Below are positions 1 to 55,609 of a stretch of 64,000 nucleotides of DNA, one piece after another. The stretch's first letter is position 1. Each line of letters opens with the position of its first letter. Both the position numbers and the translations under genes were made by a program. Under the pieces are notes generated by a model. That model was not told the origin of the DNA. It did not search any database and was given only the letters and a program-made list of their open reading frames with translations. The DNA comes from Adineta vaga (Eukaryota; Animalia; Rotifera). The DNA lies in the NCBI GenBank assembly GCA_021613535.1, contig CP075493.1:14260001-14324000 (forward strand). Reading direction: 5' to 3'.

Positions 1-1500
1 GTGCTTTGTTGTAGTTTTCAACAGCTCTCGAATGATCACTCATCTTGTGATACACTAAACCGATGTTGTTGTAACTACCGGCTAAGTCTGGATGATCGGA
101 AGGAAGAGACTTCTGTTGAATTTCGAGTGCTTTCTTGTAATTTTCAAGAGCTCTCGAATGATCGCCCATATCATAATACAGTAAACCGATGTTGTTGTAG
201 GTGGCGGCTAAGCTTGAGTGATCGGTAGGAAGAGACTTTTGTTTAATTTCGAGTGCCGTGTTGTAGTTTTCAAGAGCTCTCGAATGATCACTCATGTCAT
301 GATACACTACACCGATGTTGTTGTAACTACTGGCTAAGTCTGGATGATTGGAAGGAAGAGACTTTTGTTTAATTTCGAGTGCTTTGTTGTAGTTTTCAAC
401 AGCTCTCGAATGATCACTCATCTTGTGATACACTAAGCCGATGTTGTTGTAACTACCGGCTAAGTCTGGATGATTGAAAGGAAGAGACTTCTGTTGAATT
501 TCGAGTGCTTTGTTGTAGTTTTCAAGAGCTCGCGAATAATCACTCATGTCATGGTATAGTAAACCGATGTTGTTATAACTACCGGCTAAGTCTGGATGAT
601 CGGAAGGAAGAGACTTCTGTTGAATTTCGAATGCTTTGTTGTAGTTTTCAACAGCTCTCGAATGATCACTCATCTTGTGATACACTGAACCGATGTTGTT
701 GTAACTACTGGCTAAGTCTGGATGATTGGAAGGAAGAGATTTTTGTTTAATCGCGAGCGCCTTGTTGTGGTTTTCAATAGCTCTCGATTGATCTCCCATC
801 TTGTAATACACTAAACCGATGTTGTTGTAACTACTGGCTAAGTCTGGATGATTGGAAGGAAGAGACTTTTGCTTAATTTCTAGTGCTTTGTTGTAGTTTT
901 CAAGAGCTCTCGGATATTCACCCGTACCTTCATACACTGAACCGATATTGTTGTAACTATTGGCGAAGTCTGGGTGATTGAAAGGAAGAGACTCCTGTTG
1001 AATTTCGAGTGCTTTCTTGTAATTTTCGAGAGCTCGCGAATGATCACTCATCTTGTAATATACTAAACCGATGTTGTTGTAACTACTGGCTAAGTCTGGA
1101 TGATTGGAAGGAAGAGACTTCTGTTGAATTTCAAGTGCGTTGTTGTAGCTTTCAAGAGCTCTCGAATAATCACTCATGTCGTAATACACTAAACCGATAT
1201 TGTTGTAACTACCGGCTAAGTCTGGATGATTGGAAGGAAGAGACTTCTGTTGAATTTCAAGTGCGTTGTTGTAGTTTTCAAGAGCTCTCGAATATTCACC
1301 CGTAGCATAATACACTAAACCGATATTGTTGTAACTACTGGCTAAGCTTGAATGATCGGAAGGAAGAGACTTTTGTTTGATTTCGAGTGCTTTGTTGTAG
1401 TTTTCAAGAGCTCTCAAATGATCACCCATCTTGTAATACACTAAACCGATGTTGTTGTAACTACTGGCTAAGTCTGGATGATTGGAAGGAAGATTCTTCT
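1..1500. repeat. 126-bp tandem repeat, about 12 highly similar copies, encoding the TPR array
   Basis: The unit ...aaccgatgttgttgtaactactggctaagtctggatgattggaaggaagagact... recurs every 126 bp. Confidence 0.95.
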
Positions 1501-1692
1501 GATAAATCTCGAGTGATTTGTTATAATTTTCAAGTGCACTCGCATAGTTTTCCATTTTCGCGTATATGGAACCAATGTTACGATAAGTGACTAGTAAACG
1601 GGAACGAATATGTGAAATAAAGTTATTCTGAGTTTGATTGTTTTGGCGACCATTAGTGATGATAGATGAGGTGTGTTTTATCTCTGCATAAA
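1..1692 (-). CDS. TPR tandem-repeat protein (42-aa nephrocystin-3/kinesin-light-chain-type TPRs); large exon, 3' end beyond the window
   Basis: Missing from the ORF track because it has no stop in the window. The reverse strand reads (V)YAEIKH...LLVTYRNIGSIYAKMENYASALENYNKSLEIYQKNLPSNHPDLASSYNNIG and then repeats LEIQQKSLPSxHPDLAxSYNNIGLVYxxMxDxSRAxENYNKA. Acceptor ttttag just above 1692; candidate intron 1693-1920. The upstream exon in the same frame has a TGA at 1964-1966, so the 5' end is uncertain. Confidence 0.9.
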
Positions 1693-2714
1693 CTAAAAAT
1701 ATAGAGCCGAAATAAGTGATCAAAACTCAATAAATGAAGGTGGAGTTTTTAGAAAATGCTTTTCTGATGGATCTCTGCAGTGATGAAGAATTGAGATATA
1801 GGCTTATGTCGATCGAGTGATGTTATCATAATAGAGAACGTTCAGTTTCAGGCATTTATGGTATTATGAGTGTAAGAGTGCTTTTCAATTTGATTATCGA
1901 TTAACACGTTCAGCATGTACCTGAAACGTTGTTTGACCTTGAATCGTGAAGATCAGGAGATGGTCAGGGTGTAGAAGGCATAGTGGAAGATGTAGAATAG
2001 AATGAGTGTATTCCGTGAAATGCTGGTATATCCTTTTTTTTAGGATTTCTACATCGTCTTATAATTATTGAAAATAGGTTATTGTATAATTGAATAATAC
2101 AATTTGTTTTCACGCTGATTCTCAGTATGACATGATGTCTTCTAGCTTGTTTCTCGTGAAAAGTGTGTGAAAAGATCGTTGTTGTTAACAACTTTCTAGA
2201 TATTCTGGAGTGTTTAGAAAGGTTGATTTTTCATAATTGCTTGTAGTCAGAAATTGATAGGGACTTGAACGTATCAGTTAAACAGGGGAAGAATCCATAG
2301 TTTGAGCATTTTTAAAATACAATGTTTGATTAGATGAAAACGGATGGGTAAAAAATTCAATGGATCACAACATCATACGCGTGTGATAGAATATGATCAA
2401 TGATATTAGTTCCAGATTAAATTCAATCTGAAAATCGATTAGAATAGGTTTACTATACTGATAATGCGTTTATATCATTTATTCAGGACTAATCTTCAAA
2501 CAATAATCAAATTCTGCATGGTATTACTGCATCAGAAGATAACTAATTACGATCGACATTTTCTAGTAAATCAGGCATGCGAATTTTAACTAATTATTTT
2601 GGATTAATATAATCGGATTTCTTTCGCTACAGGAAACTCCTTACATAGAATTCAGTCTTTAAAAAAAGCAACTATTTGAAAAACTTGTGAGCTATTTTAG
2701 AGTAACTTAAACGG

Positions 2715-3573
2715 TTAAGTGCACATCCATAGTTCCGTTGCAAACATATGATTGTACTTTTTGTCATCTACGAAATACGTGAAATATGTTGTCTGCCAAC
2801 CCTTGGAGTTATTCGAATATTTATTCTTAGAAAGAAATTTGAGCATGTTTTTACCTTCGAATATTTTCAATTTCTTCTCGGATTGATTCAAGTTCATAGA
2901 ATTTACATGTTGATTTGATTCCATTTCTTTTATTACTTTCATAATTCTAAGATTATCTTCTTCGAAGTGACGAAATTTGATATTACACGACAGAGAGAAA
3001 AATAATAATAATCCATTTATAATAAGACATAATAGAACGAATAGAAAAGAACATTTCTTCAGCAATTTCTTTTTGGAAATGCCCGTTGTTTTGTTATAAC
3101 TATTAGCACCTCGATGAAGTCTCACTAAATTCAAGTTGATATGAAATCAGAATATCGGATGATTCTGTTCGTTTTCTTACATGATTGTGAATGATTCAAT
3201 CGTAAAGGCGGCATAATTTTTGATAGACTATGCATTGATCGATTGAACTGATTCGTACCTTTTTGATACTCTAATCATAGAGACTGTTAACAGTTTATCA
3301 AACAAAATTAATGAATTTACCTCGTAAGAAGTTCACAGCATCAGAACAATGAATCTCATCAAGTGCATTGATAAGATAATTGAAATCTTTATTATTAATT
3401 CTATCTTGATCAATAAGAGATCCAATAAGATTGAGAGTTCCAGAAAGTGTTGGATGATCTTGAATTCTTCGTACATCAACTTTACCAAGATAGAAATGAA
3501 GACGTTTTCGATCATTATCAGTAAGACGATGTCGAAGATTGAAAAGAATAGACTGTAAACGACGATGATCCAT
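2715..3573 (-). CDS. Death effector domain (DED) + single TM + short coiled-coil ectodomain; 3 exons
   Basis: Exon 1 MDHRRLQSILFNLRHRLTDNDRKRLHFYLG...NYLINALDEIHCSDAVNFLR fits the DED pattern. Exon 2 reads EYQKGTNQFNRSMHSLSKIMPPLRL. Exon 3 has basic KKKLLKKC, then hydrophobic SFLFVLLCLIINGLLLFFSL. Clear paralog of the gene at 51040. Confidence 0.75.
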
Positions 3574-15061: not shown

Positions 15062-17568
15062 ATGGAATCGAATGAAAAGAATGAGATTGAAGACGAAGAT
15101 TTATTTTGTCCGATAACACTTCAACTATTTCGTGATCCTGTCATTGCTGCCGATGGTCATGTATATGAACGCGAAGCAATTATACAATGGATAAACGAAC
15201 ATGGAACGAGTCCATTCACCAGACAAACATTGAATATTAATGAATTACAATCCGATGATTATTTAAGAAACCTGATTACTCTACGACGAACATCATCAGT
15301 ATCTAACAAGTATGATAGAAATAATAATTCACAATTATCTTGTCAACAACAATTATCAGTGATACCATATAATTATAATAGAAGTCTTAACCAAACATAT
15401 TCAATGCAACTACCGACAATACGTAATAGTAATATTATTTCAACAGGCATCACTCAAAATCGTTTTCCAGTTGGTAATCAGTTTTGTCAACAAATATGTC
15501 TATTCTTATTTCTGGCTCTGATTATATTGTTTTTTTTCATCCTTATATGCCATTTATATATCAGTAATCAAAATCACATTTATCCGCGTGAGTTCTCAAA
15601 TATACACATCATGAAAATTCTTTTCAATTGTATTCTCTCTCAGTATTGTATTAGTATAATAATACTCTAACACCAAAGATTTGCAAGTATTTATCCTAAT
15701 GACTGAGAAAGAAATGTAGATAATAAATGCATCAATAGCAATATCATTTATATCTATCTACTCAAACAACGAATTTTAATGATTTTTATCTTTGCTTATT
15801 TAGAACTTTCATCTATTCCTACACCAAGTTATCCGGTGATATTATTGCCGATATATTCAGGAGATTTTGATTGGGACAGCGTATCATATCGTCCTTTTGA
15901 TTCTTCGACACGTTTACAATATTTTTATGAGGCTATTCGAGTAAATGTATTCACGTCAGGTCATTACAAATTCTGGAGTAATGATATGTTCACTGGATAT
16001 GGTTATATGTACAACAACAGTTTCGATCCAACTATCCCGAAACGAAATTTACTCTTATGGAATGGTGGCGCTTATCTGCCGTTCAATCTCACAATTTTTC
16101 TTTCACCAAAGATAGATTATTTTCTAGTGGTCTCATCTCGTGACTCCATGATGATGAAATGGTTCTCGGTCTTGTGTTCTGGTCCAGGAAACATTACTTT
16201 AACTACCGCAATTCATCTTCCAACAGAAAGTAAGAATTTCAAAACGCTTTATGACGTTTTATTTTTGAATAATAGACAGAAATAGTGAACAGTTCTTTTA
16301 CGAATAACTCGAAGAAATTTCTGTATACTACATTTCGCAAAAAGAAAAACCTTAGTTTGCAGCACCATGCTTTTTGTGCACGTTGACATCGAAAATGTAT
16401 CAATTTAAAATAATATTCGGTCTATCTTTTATAATGGAGCTATTTTATAGTTTTCAATCAGAGTATACAATTTCCTTAGAAATAGATAAATTCTCTTTAA
16501 TTTCTAATGCTGCTTCGTTAAAATGATAAGACTATGTTACGGTTCGACAGGAGAATTTTAAGTATTATTTTGATAATTTCTTAAGACTATGGAATTAAGC
16601 TGAGCATTTCACCTAAATCTTCTCATATTTTCGAAAGTTGAACATCTGTACATTGTTCTTCACACCGAGTTAAGTTACATTTGCATAATAGTTTTAATTT
16701 TAGAGCGAAAATATCATTCTTATAGCTTCCTTCCTCATAAATCTGCAGAAAAGGTCAACCAATCTTATCCTTGAAATGAATATTGTAATTTGTACTCGAC
16801 TAATTCAGATAATATTTTTTCTAATTTTTATGTTATTTTGATTTACAGTCAAATCGTAAAGATAATTGATTGCAATAGTTTTCACTTTCTCAAAAGGATA
16901 AAATTTTTATTTTAGTTTCATCTCTATCAAAAGAGATGTTCAAAAACAGTACTTGTGAAAAGAAGCTATGGGATCAAAATGGTATTACTGTAGCTGGTGG
17001 AAACGAAGACGGAGGATCAGCATTGAATCAACTCTATTATCCCGAAGGCTTATTTATGGATGACAATGATACTCTTTACATCGCTGATTCTTGGAACGGC
17101 CGAATCTTTAAGTGGATACCAGGAGCATCCGATGATCAGATATTGATTCAAATTAGAAAACTACCTCTTGGGGAGCAGCCCACTGTAACAAAAGTTGTCG
17201 TTGACAAGAATAGCACAATGTTTGTTTGTGAATCTGGCAACAGAAAAGTAAAACGATGGTTCAAAAATAATGATCATGGAGAAACCATTATTAACAATAT
17301 TTCATGTTATGGATTGACTTTGGACGATAAAGGATCATTGTATGTCTCGGATCAAGAACATCATCGAGTAATTAAATGGCCTAATAATACGATCGTTGCT
17401 GGGGGAAATGGAAAAGGCAGAGCATTAGATCAATTTGATCGTCCTAAACATATATTCATCGACCATAATCAGTCTCTTTTTGTGGCCGATTACTGGAATG
17501 ATCAAATGTTCACTAAAAATAAAAATTTGTGTGAAAGAGGTATGTGGATGATTCCACAGTATGTGTGA
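15062..17568 (+). CDS. U-box E3 ligase domain + single TM + beta-sandwich ectodomain + NHL repeats (C-terminally truncated); exons 15062-15587, 15804-16229, 16916-17568
   Basis: U-box FCPITLQLFRDPVIAADGHVYEREAIIQW...SPFTR; TM ICLFLFLALIILFFFILIC. Both junctions (c|gtgagt...tag|aa and a|gtaaga...ttag|tt) are phase 1 and in frame. NHL motifs TVAGGN...LNQLYYPEGL...LYIADSWNGRI. Confidence 0.7.
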
Positions 17569-50330: not shown

Positions 50331-51039
50331 GGGCGTACATATCTCAAACACATCGTCTCAATCAGATTTTCTCTGAGAAGACAGAAGATCTACCTGGACT
50401 CGAAAAACTGCTTCGATAATGAAACTGAATTTTATGTAATTTAACTTTAGAACTGTAAAAAAAGTCGTTATTTTAATCGTATAAACAAGATATTCATGAT
50501 GACATGGACTACATATGACTCATTAATGTTTTCGTTTTGATAAACAAGTAAAAGCACAACTTACTATGGCGATTTAGAAAACGCTTATATTTTTTTTCTT
50601 TCCTTTCTTTTCTTCTCATCTCGCCCATCATGTTATTGATGGAAAACCGTATCGTTCTCTTTTCTCTCATACGTGTTATGATGATGTCTCCCCTCGTGTT
50701 TAGCGCTTGTCTCTTCTTTTTTATACATATTTCGACCGAATTTTCTATTTCCATGCTCATTTGTTGGACACACAAATGTTCGGATAGAAATTTTCTGCCC
50801 GCACATGTAACGATACGCCTATAGATATGAGAAAATACAAATAGTCTTTCCCGTACTCGTATCTTTACTACTAACAATAAGTACGTTGAATTTTTTGATT
50901 TTTTTCCCTCGTTCTTATTGTGAAGTACATATTATCTTTTATTGGTCGACTTTTTTTTATATGAAATGAAAGAAAGAGAAAGAAACGAAGATCTCAACTT
51001 TGCTTCTTCTTCTTCTTCTTCTTAGCAAATACAATATTG

Positions 51040-52767
51040 ATGGATAATCTACGTTTACGTGCTATACTTTTAAATCTTCAAGATCGTCTGAGTAATGATG
51101 ATCGAAAACGTCTTCATTTCTATTTTGGCAATGATATTCCACGAAGAATTCGAGATGATCCATCACTAGGTGGCACTCTCAATTTAATGGATTCTCTTTT
51201 CGATCAAGATAAAATTAACGATGAAGATTTTACTTATCTTATCAATGCTTTCGATCAAATTCGTTGTTTAGATGCAGTCAAATTGTTAAAAGGTAATTCC
51301 GTTTTCTTTGCGATTGATTTCTAATTATTTTCGATTATGTTTAGAACATTTAAATCGAAAGGCTACGTTTGGATTAAATCAATCGATGCAGAGTTTATAG
51401 TAATAATGCCACCGATCTTGGATAAACTTCTTCAGGATGCTGACGAAGATGACGATGGTCAACAAATGGTATCCTCTTGTAAGTAAGATACGGTTTGATA
51501 TTTTATTCTAATTTCAACTGTATTTTAGCTCTTGTTATCAAACAAAATCCTCGTGATACAAATATTCTTGAGCAACGCAAAGATTCATCTTTAATAATAA
51601 CAAGAAAATCCTTGTTTCGAAAATGTATTTTTGCATTTATTTTCTTCTTAATTATTGTGTCTTTAATTTCCTTCTCTTTCTGGAATTATATGAGTATCGG
51701 TCAACTAAAATTAAAACATATAGAAGTAAATAAGATGATACAAGAAATACAAATCAGTCAAAATAACCACCTTAACTTAGTGAAACAATTACAAAATCAA
51801 TCAATAATGATGATGATCAATAAAAGTAAATGAAATATTTTTTATTCAATTCGAACGATATGTTTACAGAAGAATTTTTTTTCCAGAATCAAAATTTAAA
51901 CTATACGCCAAAATTGTTGCAGGAGGAAATAAACATGGAGATGAATTAAATCAATTATCTGGTCCTGATGGGATATTCATTGATGAAGAGAAGACGATGT
52001 TTATTACTGATTATTATAACCATACTATTATCAAATGGAAATATAATGAAAAGATAGGAGAAATTATTGCAGGTGGAAATGGAAATGGAACGAGATTGGA
52101 TCAATTGTATTGTCCAACAGATACAATTGTTGATGAAGAAAGTAGTTCGATCATCATTGCTGATCGATGGAATAATCGAGTGATTCGATGGTTTAATCGT
52201 CGACAACAAGAAATTCTTATTGATAATATTGTTTGTTATGGTTTAACAATGGATAGTCAAGGTTTTCTCTATGTCTCTGATACAGACAAGAATGAAGTGA
52301 AACGATGGAAAATTGGAGACAAACAAATGTTAGTAGCTGGTGGAAATGGAAAAGGAAATCAACTTAATCAACTCAATGGTCCTACTCACATCTTTGTTGA
52401 TGAAGATTATTCTCTTTATGTATCAGATGGAGGAAATCATCGTGTAATGAAATGGCAAAAAAATGCGAGTGAAGGAATTGTTGTAGCTGGAGGAAATGGT
52501 CAAGGTGGAAATCTTAATCAATTGTTTTATCCTTCAGGATTAGTTGTCGATCGATGGGGTCAAATCTATATAGCTGATTGTTATAATCATCGAATCATGC
52601 GATGGTCTGAAGGAGATAAAGAAGGTGAAATTGTAGTTGGTGGAAATGGCAAAGGCAATGGATTAAATCAACTGAACACTCCTCGTGGTTTAACATTTGA
52701 TCTGAATGGAAATCTTTATGTTGCAGATTCTTGGAATAGTCGAATCGTTCGATTTGATTTACTTTGA
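51040..52767 (+). CDS. DED + single TM + coiled-coil stalk + six NHL repeats; 4 exons, 1-nt deletion near 51398 in exon 2
   Basis: DED MDNLRLRAILLNLQDRLSNDDRKRLHFYFGNDIPRR...AFDQIRCLDAVKLLK; RKSLFRKC then IFAFIFFLIIVSLISFSFW. Last exon from 51887 has repeated VAGGNGxGxxLNQLxxPxGxxVD...YVAD..NHR. Exons approx. 51040-51292, 51345-51478, 51529-51826, 51887-52767. Confidence 0.8.
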
Positions 52768-52886: not shown

Positions 52887-55378
52887 TTATTTCTGACATT
52901 TTGTGTTGACTGATGCACCAAGTAATTGTGATGACAATGGCAACATCAGTGAAACATTAGTCGTTGTCGCATCGGAAGCACATCCTTGGCCATATCCCAC
53001 TCGATCGACTATTACTCTCAGTGTTCCATTTACTTGCAATGGATGTGAAGCAGTAATAGTAAAATCAACATTAGTTTCACTGAATAGATAAGCACCAGCA
53101 TGAGACAATTGTATATTTATCTCGAAGAGTGAACTTTTACATGAGAAGCTAGTGTTAACATTCGCCCATAGAACAAATGAAGCACGCTTTAATGAAGGCC
53201 ACATTGTTCCATGAAAAAGATGATTGGTTGATATGCATGAAAAGACTTGTTGATCATTGTACTGTTTAATTACAGTGGGCATCAATGCCAATGATACGTT
53301 CGGTAAGATCATGTAACGATAATCAAGTGTGTATGGCCCTTGTCCGTGATCTAACCAGATAGTTACCGTACGAGCTGTTACTGTATAATTGTAAGCACCA
53401 ATCGTGTCAAAATTTCCTGTTTTTATACCAAAATTAATACCGACAGATGCATATAGTCCTTGATTTTGTAAAAGATAACCGAAATCTGTTTCACCTAGAT
53501 GTATCCATTGAACATTCGATGTTGCATTGCTCGACGAATATGGAAATGAATAATTTCCATCGGATAAAGTAAGAATAGTGGAATTAAAAAAACCAACAGT
53601 AATGTCACCTGTTTTATATAAACGGCTGGCCAATGTTGTCCAAGCTCGATTAGCTGTAGTCAATGTAAGATTTGTAGCAAGAGCAATAATAGCATCATCA
53701 TAGAAATGCCACGATCGTTGTGCTGTTAAATTATGTGTTGCCGTATCCATCATAGCCATTCCATAAAAATCATCACTTACACCTCCGACAAACGGTAATC
53801 TTATCAATGAAGCAGGTACATCATTACACATGACTAGAGGAATATCATGTTCAACAGTAATACCATTGATTGATTGCCAATCAAGTAAAGGAAAGAAAAA
53901 GACATAATCATTAGCGTCTGTAGTAAACAAATTGAGTACACCTTGACCAGTATGTTCACGTTTCAGATTTTCTCCATTTCCACATTCATCGGGATTAGTA
54001 CGAACGGATTGCATTTTAATAGCACTCGTCCAATTTTGACGACGATGAACATGGTAATCTGATGTATAGAAATGTTTATTTCCAATCAATGCACTCGCAT
54101 TGGGAAAATGATCTAGACGATCAGCAAAATTTAATAAATTATTTCGAAGATTGATCGTTGGTATAACTTGTGCTAAAGCTCTTATATGTTGCGTTTTATA
54201 AGGAACGAGATAACCTCTATCGGGACGAGTAATTGCTCTTCCTTTCACGTGCCAATCCCATTGATTAGTAATGGCCATCCATGCGTCACCATCATGAGAA
54301 ATCGTGCAAAAAGTATCAGTTTCTCGAGATCTGGTGCATATTGTGTGTCAACACTGCACAAAAAGAATGAAAAAATATTTTGTGCCCAATCTGCACCATA
54401 AGCAGCGGAGAGTAATTGTGTACCATGAAAATGATAAGCAAAATCATTTTGTACACCTTCTTTATTTAACGGTTGAATCATAATATCTTGCCACATACGA
54501 GTAAATCCTTGTTCGATGCCCGTAAGATTACGCGTGGCCAACGATCGATACAATTGTGCTTGAATCATCCATACTAGATTACAACCAGTTGTCCACTGAT
54601 CACCTATCAATTGGAAGTAAAAATACCGAAAAAGAGTGTCAACAACAAACACGTCGAAAAAAGTATGTCCAAAAAAAATGTCGATCATATGAAAAGTCAG
54701 ATTTTTTCCAAACAGGGTGTGAGTGAAGGTTTCTAGATAAGCATGATATCTGCACTCTTCGCTCAGCTATCAACCTTAGCCTCACCTTCGCAGTCTCACT
54801 GTCTTTCTAATATTTCGATATACTTGGCTTAGTCTTTTTACTATTTACTCACCTGACCACCAATTGGCGCGATATGAAATTTCTTTGATTTTTTCTAATT
54901 CAAAACTGGTGACATTGTCTCCTAACATCAATAAATGACCAGTGGTAGATATGGGAATAGAAATTCGATTCCACCACCAATTCGGATTTTGCCAATCTCT
55001 TGTTAACCAAACGTTTAATGCACAATGTGCAGCAGATAATAATCTGGTATTATTTCGTTGAGTCGAACCATTGACAGTCAATGCTTGTATCATCACAGTA
55101 ACTCGTGATATATGGATTGCTGTTAACCAATTAGCACGACCTTGATCAGTATAATTAACATCTAGCCAATAACAAGAACTATTCAATGTTTGAGCATATC
55201 GAAGTGCATTTTCGACTATGGATGGAATAGAATTAGGATTTGGCCAAATCATTTGTTCTAGAACACGTTGTCGAATAATGGAAATATCATCATTTGGTGG
55301 ACGTGTCGAAATGCACAATGATATAGATGAACAAAGAAAGACAATCTTCAGAATAGATATACTCTGGTATATTAACAT
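52887..55378 (-). CDS. Polysaccharide lyase family 8 (chondroitin AC/hyaluronate lyase-like), secreted; intron 54604-54852, 1-nt frameshift near 54294
   Basis: NPNWWWNRISIP, TGCNLVW, EGVQNDFAYHFHGTQLLSAAYG (catalytic His/Tyr), VKGRAITRP (catalytic Arg), GNKHFYTSDYHVHRR, ECGNGENLK, DWQSINGIT, FVGGVSD. Confidence 0.9.
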
Positions 55379-55609
55379 CGTAAGAATAAGTGTTTCTATA
55401 GAAAAAAAAACTTGTGCTGTAGGTATCTTATATGGTATGCTTATCAATAAAGAGATAATGAGATAGAAACATACCTTTCTCTTGCTTTTTAACAACGAGA
55501 AAAACAGACAAATTATTATCAACGATACTTGTAGGAACATTATTTTTATTAAAAAAATAAATAAATGTAACTAAGTTATTTGCAGGATTTACTAAGCGAA
55601 AAAGTTTGT

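Follow-up and report, generated by a model that had tools for sequence, protein, structure and literature searches.

The window analysed here, 64,000 nucleotides of contig CP075493.1 in the Adineta vaga assembly GCA_021613535.1 (100.8 Mb in six contigs, the genome searched), carries on its forward strand a four-exon gene (51040-52767) that was obtained from a three-frame reading and searched exon by exon. The gene, intact once a one-base assembly error is corrected, encodes 521 amino acids comprising an N-terminal death effector domain (DED), an acidic linker, a single transmembrane (TM) helix, a stalk, and a C-terminal NHL beta-propeller (Table 1). A polysaccharide lyase family 8 gene, probably of bacterial origin, lies convergent with it at 52887-55540 on the reverse strand, and a second member of the same DED family stands at the start of the window.

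Table 1. Features of the DED-TM-NHL gene and of the second family member in the window
Feature	Position	Strand	Support
Exon 1: start codon and DED, 84 aa, six helices	51040..51292	+	Pfam, profile, AlphaFold2 model, structure comparison
Intron 1: 52 nt, GT-AG, phase 1	51293..51344	+	joint in spliced runs X9, X11, X13
Exon 2: acidic linker, predicted cytosolic; one base missing in the assembly at 51398-51399, giving a false stop	51345..51478	+	extra base in four runs
Intron 2: 50 nt, GT-AG, phase 1	51479..51528	+	joint in runs X9, X11
Exon 3: linker, basic patch, TM helix, 48-residue stalk with one N-glycosylation sequon	51529..51825	+	
Basic patch within exon 3	51603-51623	+	
TM helix in exon 3, first residue Cys	51624-51680	+	
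Intron 3: 61 nt, GT-AG, phase 1	51826..51886	+	joint in runs X9, X11, X13
Exon 4: NHL beta-propeller of six blades, with hypervariable top-face positions rich in aromatic residues; stop codon	51887..52767	+	
Second family member: DED exon 3573-3322, TM/stalk exon within 3146-2718, TPR frame from 1726 past the window start	2..3573	-	

In the assembly, exon 2 is interrupted by an in-frame stop at 51398-51400, from which the gene could be taken for a pseudogene or a DED-only decoy. Reads across this site, a check suggested in a preliminary description made from the sequence alone, were compared in four runs, one of DNA (X2) and three spliced (X9, X11, and X13): public contigs of X2, X9, and X13 have one additional base after 51398, and X11 has the equivalent base after 51399. 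With the frame restored in four of four runs, the stop is a one-base assembly error, the gene is intact, and both the pseudogene and the decoy were rejected, as was a rescue via an alternative acceptor at 51391, which no contig uses and whose AG is missing in one haplotype. All three introns occur as joints in spliced contigs, and a single 1110-nt contig (contig 21 of run X9) joins exons 1 to 4, bearing out the proposed splicing of the DED and TM exons to the NHL exon. Spliced contigs from three independent studies indicate that the gene is transcribed, these assembled contigs reporting the presence of a transcript and not its level. They start at 51032-51038, and no in-frame ATG lies upstream of 51040. 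Within 51662-51780 of the TM/stalk exon, three of the four allelic differences seen are amino acid changes.

The N-terminal domain had been described as DED-like with an expected six-helix fold, and profile and structural comparisons agree. Pfam DED (PF01335) matched exon 1 at E 6.5e-7 and 29.9 bits, under the curated cut-off of 35.9 that the relative P0106 and seven genome loci pass, and a profile of 70 relatives found the caspase-8 DED as its top PDB match (E 4.6e-7). The AlphaFold2 model contains six helices (pLDDT 91.7); the first 49 rows of its Foldseek search are all DEDs, and it superposes on the FADD DED with Z 12.0 and an rmsd of 1.7 A over 80 residues (Z 10.7-12.0 against known DEDs), above PYD (9.6), DD (8.8), and CARD (7.9), so that these three identities were rejected. 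As modelled, the exon 1 domain folds as a true DED. It preserves the hydrophobic FL-type patch, which is used for DED chain assembly, and keeps the Asp of the RxDL motif (helix 6 charge triad), the Arg being replaced by Cys.

This replacement bears on an inhibitory or tuning role, in which a single DED would tie up its DED partners at the membrane, in the manner of PEA-15 or cFLIP, and dampen DED-RIG-I signalling until ligand or cleavage frees them. Of 131 receptor-family DEDs, 123 have Cys in place of this Arg, which is kept in both DED-only proteins and one RIG-I-like DED (see below), and a protease might cleave within the acidic linker. However, the retained FL-type patch speaks for chain assembly and such a role needs fewer than fifty different heads, which makes it distinctly unlikely.

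Concerning the membrane segment, exon 1 has no signal peptide (peak hydropathy 0.68), and the only hydrophobic segment in the gene is the TM helix (hydropathy 2.79), which directly follows the basic patch, all as previously described. The coiled-coil stalk fared less well: across its 48 residues the best heptad reaches an a/d hydrophobic share of 0.57, identity is 29% to the two relatives where it can be aligned at all, and the Rotaria socialis relative P0013 lacks it. The coiled coil is therefore a weak prediction and dispensable in a relative, and DED self-assembly is at least as likely as the stalk to bring about oligomerisation.

The one TM follows about 180 residues that include a folded domain and no signal peptide. 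There is a modest charge bias over the TM: of 27 relatives, 16 are more positive on the N-side and 9 on the C-side. N-glycosylation sequons in the family carry more weight, numbering 69 against 40 expected on the C-side of the TM, 43 against 34 on the N-side, and 17 against 22 in cytosolic controls. In NHL domains of DED-TM proteins the observed-to-expected ratio is 1.84, versus 1.09 in related NHL proteins without a hydrophobic segment, the NHL domain of this gene itself showing no enrichment (3 versus 2.5 expected). Some family members further bear six-cysteine, defensin-like heads. The sequons and Cys-rich heads, along with the TM position, argue with good support for the type II, N-in topology that had been predicted: the DED and acidic linker would be cytosolic and the propeller, probably glycosylated, would lie outside the cell or in the endosomal lumen. 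A reversed or all-cytosolic arrangement, with the propeller as a cytosolic sensor tethered to an organelle like its TRIM-like relatives, draws on the cytosolic location of the closest NHL relatives (B-box-like/coiled-coil-NHL proteins) and on the TPR heads, which are depleted in sequons (28 versus 46 expected); domains of the TPR, jacalin, and DM9 types are often found in the cytosol. We consider it very improbable given the TM position without a signal peptide, a sequon gain specific to TM-linked NHL domains, and the defensin-like heads elsewhere in the family. Within the linker, no Tyr of an ITAM or hemITAM is conserved across family relatives, and a Dectin-1-like hemITAM was rejected on this ground.

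The six NHL repeats previously noted are matched by Pfam NHL (E 5.7e-29), and the exon 4 model forms 24 strands in six blades (pLDDT 94.5). Its closest fold neighbours are SOQ1, TRIM71, and TRIM2 (Z 34-35 for the latter two), and the extracellular sensor of PknD (PDB 1rwi) matches at E 5.5e-20 and Z 30.2. The module is abundant, with 947 NHL candidates in the A. vaga genome and more than 6000 database matches, the best 120 of which are all bdelloid where named. The nearest relatives (60-65%) are mostly soluble with a Cys-rich, B-box-like/coiled-coil N-terminus, with a metacaspase domain or a TM in some others. Separately, a putative gene at 15062-17568 on the forward strand of the window would encode a U-box, a hydrophobic segment, an unassigned domain, and then NHL, a similar head with a predicted ubiquitin-ligase output. 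Metacaspase-like C14 exons also lie just upstream of same-strand NHL exons at C2:1208770, C3:3600694, C5:3791111, and C1:13085850 (G000), and P0273 is a C14-NHL fusion; these arrangements may represent soluble sensor-protease proteins.

Across 38 aligned propellers, hypervariable positions recur blade by blade; they account for 25 of the 92 positions that lie in d-a and b-c loops and for 0 of the 59 in the opposite loops, and they are rich in Tyr and Trp. By established propeller geometry, the d-a and b-c loops make up the top, ligand-binding face. Because most rows of the alignment are soluble NHL relatives and the positions are not independent, this variability describes the module rather than selection on this gene. 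The propeller had been proposed to bind a ligand, and the confinement of the hypervariable positions to one side offers good support for the variable top face as the putative binding surface.

The gene belongs to a large family. DED matches occur at 54-57 places in the A. vaga genome, some broken and several with stops, corresponding to roughly 50 related DED genes, and these counts are lower bounds since intron-split DEDs can be missed. A basic-flanked TM exon follows 260-560 nt downstream of the DED in 34 of the 44 matches inspected, a count from a hydropathy screen in AT-rich DNA that agrees with the TM present in 27 database proteins. The heads in A. vaga comprise NHL, jacalin or jacalin-like, DM9, long TPR frames, Cys-rich domains, and one with ricin-B-type motifs, and other bdelloids add GH16 and ricin-B plus jacalin; DED-to-head splicing was seen in transcripts for this gene alone. 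This count of DED-TM genes and their ectodomains, which the preliminary description had called for, brought out what it had overlooked, namely that the propeller is one of several interchangeable heads, many of them of sugar-binding types. Members suspected to be short-tailed and MAVS-like were rejected as such, as they precede long TPR frames. In the second family member of the window, a TPR frame of 1142 codons is predicted to be joined to the DED and TM exons; its DED is identical to that of an oppositely oriented copy 83 kb away (G000:C1:14346549), which suggests a recent inverted duplication.

HMMER with the DED returned 220 matches among 1.84 billion proteins; 30 were looked up, the 70 weakest being left out, and every named one is bdelloid (Adineta, Rotaria, and Didymodactylos). 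A word-based search from P0056 gave 2 matches. UniRef labels members only as 'DED domain-containing protein', the C-terminal parts of P0087, P0124, P0117, and P0034 matched no Pfam family above cut-off, and that of P0124 had no PDB sequence match. In metagenome contigs of a eukaryote, probably a rotifer, an intronless DED-TM-NHL gene adjoins another NHL gene (L058:8137-10573); a viral origin of the intronless metagenome copies was rejected, their neighbours being intron-split eukaryotic genes.

Among the five closest NHL-bearing or near relatives, the DEDs are 73-90% identical and the NHL domains 36-59%. On a DED tree of 84 columns, in which many forks are open, 24 head-label changes are needed and supported sister DEDs bear different heads. 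DEDs far more conserved than their heads, together with sister DEDs carrying different heads, indicate a constant signalling module with exchangeable sensors. The same turnover could simply be what exon shuffling between very large repeat families leaves behind, the products having little function: there are 947 NHL candidates to draw on, DED copies with stops, and phase-1 introns that ease fusions. Against this, the DED-TM-NHL architecture is common to Adineta vaga, A. ricciae, and Rotaria socialis, the DED family is also found in Didymodactylos, the DED is strongly conserved, and spliced contigs occur in three independent studies, so that we give this explanation very little credence.

What the DED might engage was approached through the soluble proteins of the genome. 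The preliminary description had the receptor recruit DED caspases directly and without an adaptor, which would trigger apoptosis. Canonical caspases are present, the receptor DED profile is closest to the caspase-8 DED, and direct-connection receptors are described in amphioxus (PMC2575513). However, DED searches of the genome found no DED inside any caspase gene: the ten best of 70 C14 exon matches are prodomain-less, metacaspase-like loci (a bdelloid metacaspase expansion has been noted; PMC11258130), two canonical caspases have short non-DED N-termini, and a third, with a QACRG motif (G000:C1:5157681-5158558), lies 5.8 Mb from the nearest DED match. The nearest DED-C14 pair, 4.6 kb apart, is split by a long TPR frame, and no caspase motif occurs among DED-bearing database proteins. 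Direct recruitment is thus very unlikely, and of the preliminary reading as a whole, the death fold, splicing, topology, propeller, and novelty hold up while the direct caspase step does not.

Neither CARD nor FADD was detected in the genome search, in which no DED match shares a gene with a Death match, and IRF was not detected in a search run without a control. Separately, Death and TIR domains share one open frame, of about 550 codons, at each of G000:C1:10656490, C4:7676586, and C4:7684040, which are MyD88-like candidates. Four soluble DED proteins were found: a pair of DED-only proteins resembling PEA-15 and a pair of DED-headed RIG-I-like helicases (best PDB match RIG-I, E 3.5e-29), and since the same DED family heads these helicases, it is tied to immune sensing. 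Both helicase genes follow a DED-only gene at L062:363-6349 (G000:C5:14943200-14950500), and the ATPase motifs of the first helicase are divergent. A tandem-DED helicase at C5:14943.6k was rejected because the first DED ends in a stop; this stop, its grouping with the other DED-only protein, and a similar tail lead us to read it as a second DED-only gene. The other DED-only protein, of 126 aa (L053:4897-5283 on the reverse strand, G000:C2:2299699-2300082), shows full-length conservation of 57-67% among Adineta and Rotaria sequences, keeps the RxDL motif, and has an invariant P-x-P-F-S-L tail and invariant C-terminal motifs; its homology to the receptor DED has a probability of 99%. It resembles PEA-15 in size and layout (score 0.88), which is a lead only, and its tail loosely recalls pLxIS adaptor motifs. 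By elimination, this protein is the best, if weakly supported, adaptor candidate.

Taken together, the gene on balance probably encodes a single-pass recognition receptor of type II, one that clusters upon ligand binding and passes its signal on via a DED-only adaptor, most likely in innate immunity. With moderate confidence, the receptors would be brought together by a polyvalent ligand, probably a glycan or protein on a microbial surface, the kind also expected for members with jacalin, DM9, GH16, and ricin-B heads, and the clustered DEDs would nucleate a DED assembly. The later steps are only weakly indicated: the assembly might recruit a DED-only protein, either the 126-aa one that resembles PEA-15 or its paralog next to the RIG-I-like genes; the invariant tail motif of this adaptor might relay the signal to a death effector, a ubiquitin ligase, or a kinase, and caspases, if involved, might act further downstream and not via a DED prodomain.

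The heads might instead read self glycans, neighbouring cells, desiccation damage, or food cues, with the DED feeding stress or developmental signalling. Extracellular NHL propellers in teneurins, a fold match, serve adhesion, lectin folds bind self glycans too, and the pathogen link of the family is putative. Yet a large family with fast turnover, broken copies, and swapped heads, a hypervariable binding face, and a DED common to RIG-I-like sensors fit host-pathogen conflict better, and we regard non-immune recognition as unlikely. Extending the immune reading, bdelloid innate signalling as a whole could possibly have been rebuilt on one DED family, in which about 50 type II receptors, their lectin, propeller, and repeat heads being exchangeable, and the DED-RIG-I-like sensors would all converge on the PEA-15-like DED-only adaptor, and the NHL head would be a variable scaffold drawn from several hundred propellers, like LRR repertoires; this broader proposal is tentative and more doubtful than the receptor reading itself.

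Bdelloid effectors against pathogens have been described (PMC11258130 and PMC11476962), and, according to a review, A. vaga is without canonical TLRs and reported pathways (PMC6043800). That the NHL and TPR expansions serve defence had been no more than a guess (PMC3846280), a rotifer lectin survey left out TM proteins and made no mention of death domains (PMC8878817), and neither DED nor NHL labels occur in the available text of the infection RNA-seq supplement of PMC11258130. We found no paper with both 'bdelloid' and 'death effector domain' in the open literature, beyond which most subscription papers lie, nor any describing this architecture in the literature searched, consistent with the earlier view of it as uncharacterised. 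From their sequences, the DED-TM receptors resemble innate immune receptors of a class not yet described, and the family offers concrete receptor and adaptor candidates for pathogen detection in bdelloids and bears on how an ancient asexual lineage keeps pace with parasites. If true, it would further provide a natural example of a DED as the direct output of a membrane receptor and of an NHL propeller serving as a recognition surface that diversifies.

Several known systems share parts of this design. Like the TNFR death receptors (Fas, TNFR1, and DR4/5), the proposed receptor is single-pass with a cytosolic death-fold domain and ligand-driven clustering, but those are type I proteins with a signal peptide, cysteine-rich TNFR repeats, and a C-terminal DD needing FADD, whereas the rotifer gene has neither signal peptide nor TNFR repeats, places a DED at the N-terminus and an NHL head at the other end, and comes without a detected FADD. 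Type II C-type lectin receptors (the Dectin-1 group) are laid out as cytosolic N-terminus, TM, stalk, and recognition head. The rotifer gene, judged from hydropathy and sequons, fits this topology, with N-terminal cytosolic signalling, one TM, a stalk, a C-terminal recognition domain, and diversified heads, but it lacks a C-type lectin domain and a conserved Tyr-based ITAM, its signalling unit being a folded DED. It has a true DED fold and FL-type patch in common with FADD, caspase-8/10, cFLIP, and PEA-15, all of which are soluble, while its single DED is membrane-anchored with Cys for the RxDL Arg. TRIM-NHL proteins and the bdelloid B-box-like/coiled-coil-NHL proteins, the latter its closest sequence relatives, possess the same six-bladed propeller but are cytosolic with neither TM nor DED; the rotifer gene has a DED and TM in place of the RING, B-box, coiled coil, and soluble form of TRIM-NHL. 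In DED-NACHT receptors of amphioxus, sea urchin, and Nematostella (PMC2575513) and DED-RLRs of Lingula (PMC8998645), a DED is joined directly to a pathogen sensor, as in the A. vaga DED-RIG-I-like genes of the same DED family, but those sensors are cytosolic, and the available text of both papers reports no transmembrane DED receptor. Mycobacterium tuberculosis PknD likewise combines a cytosolic signalling domain, one TM, and an extracellular six-bladed NHL sensor, though it is bacterial, has a kinase output, and came by its architecture through an unrelated origin. Thus, while falling outside the TNFR, C-type lectin receptor, and TRIM-NHL families, the rotifer gene would, by analogy, work like a pattern-recognition or death receptor.
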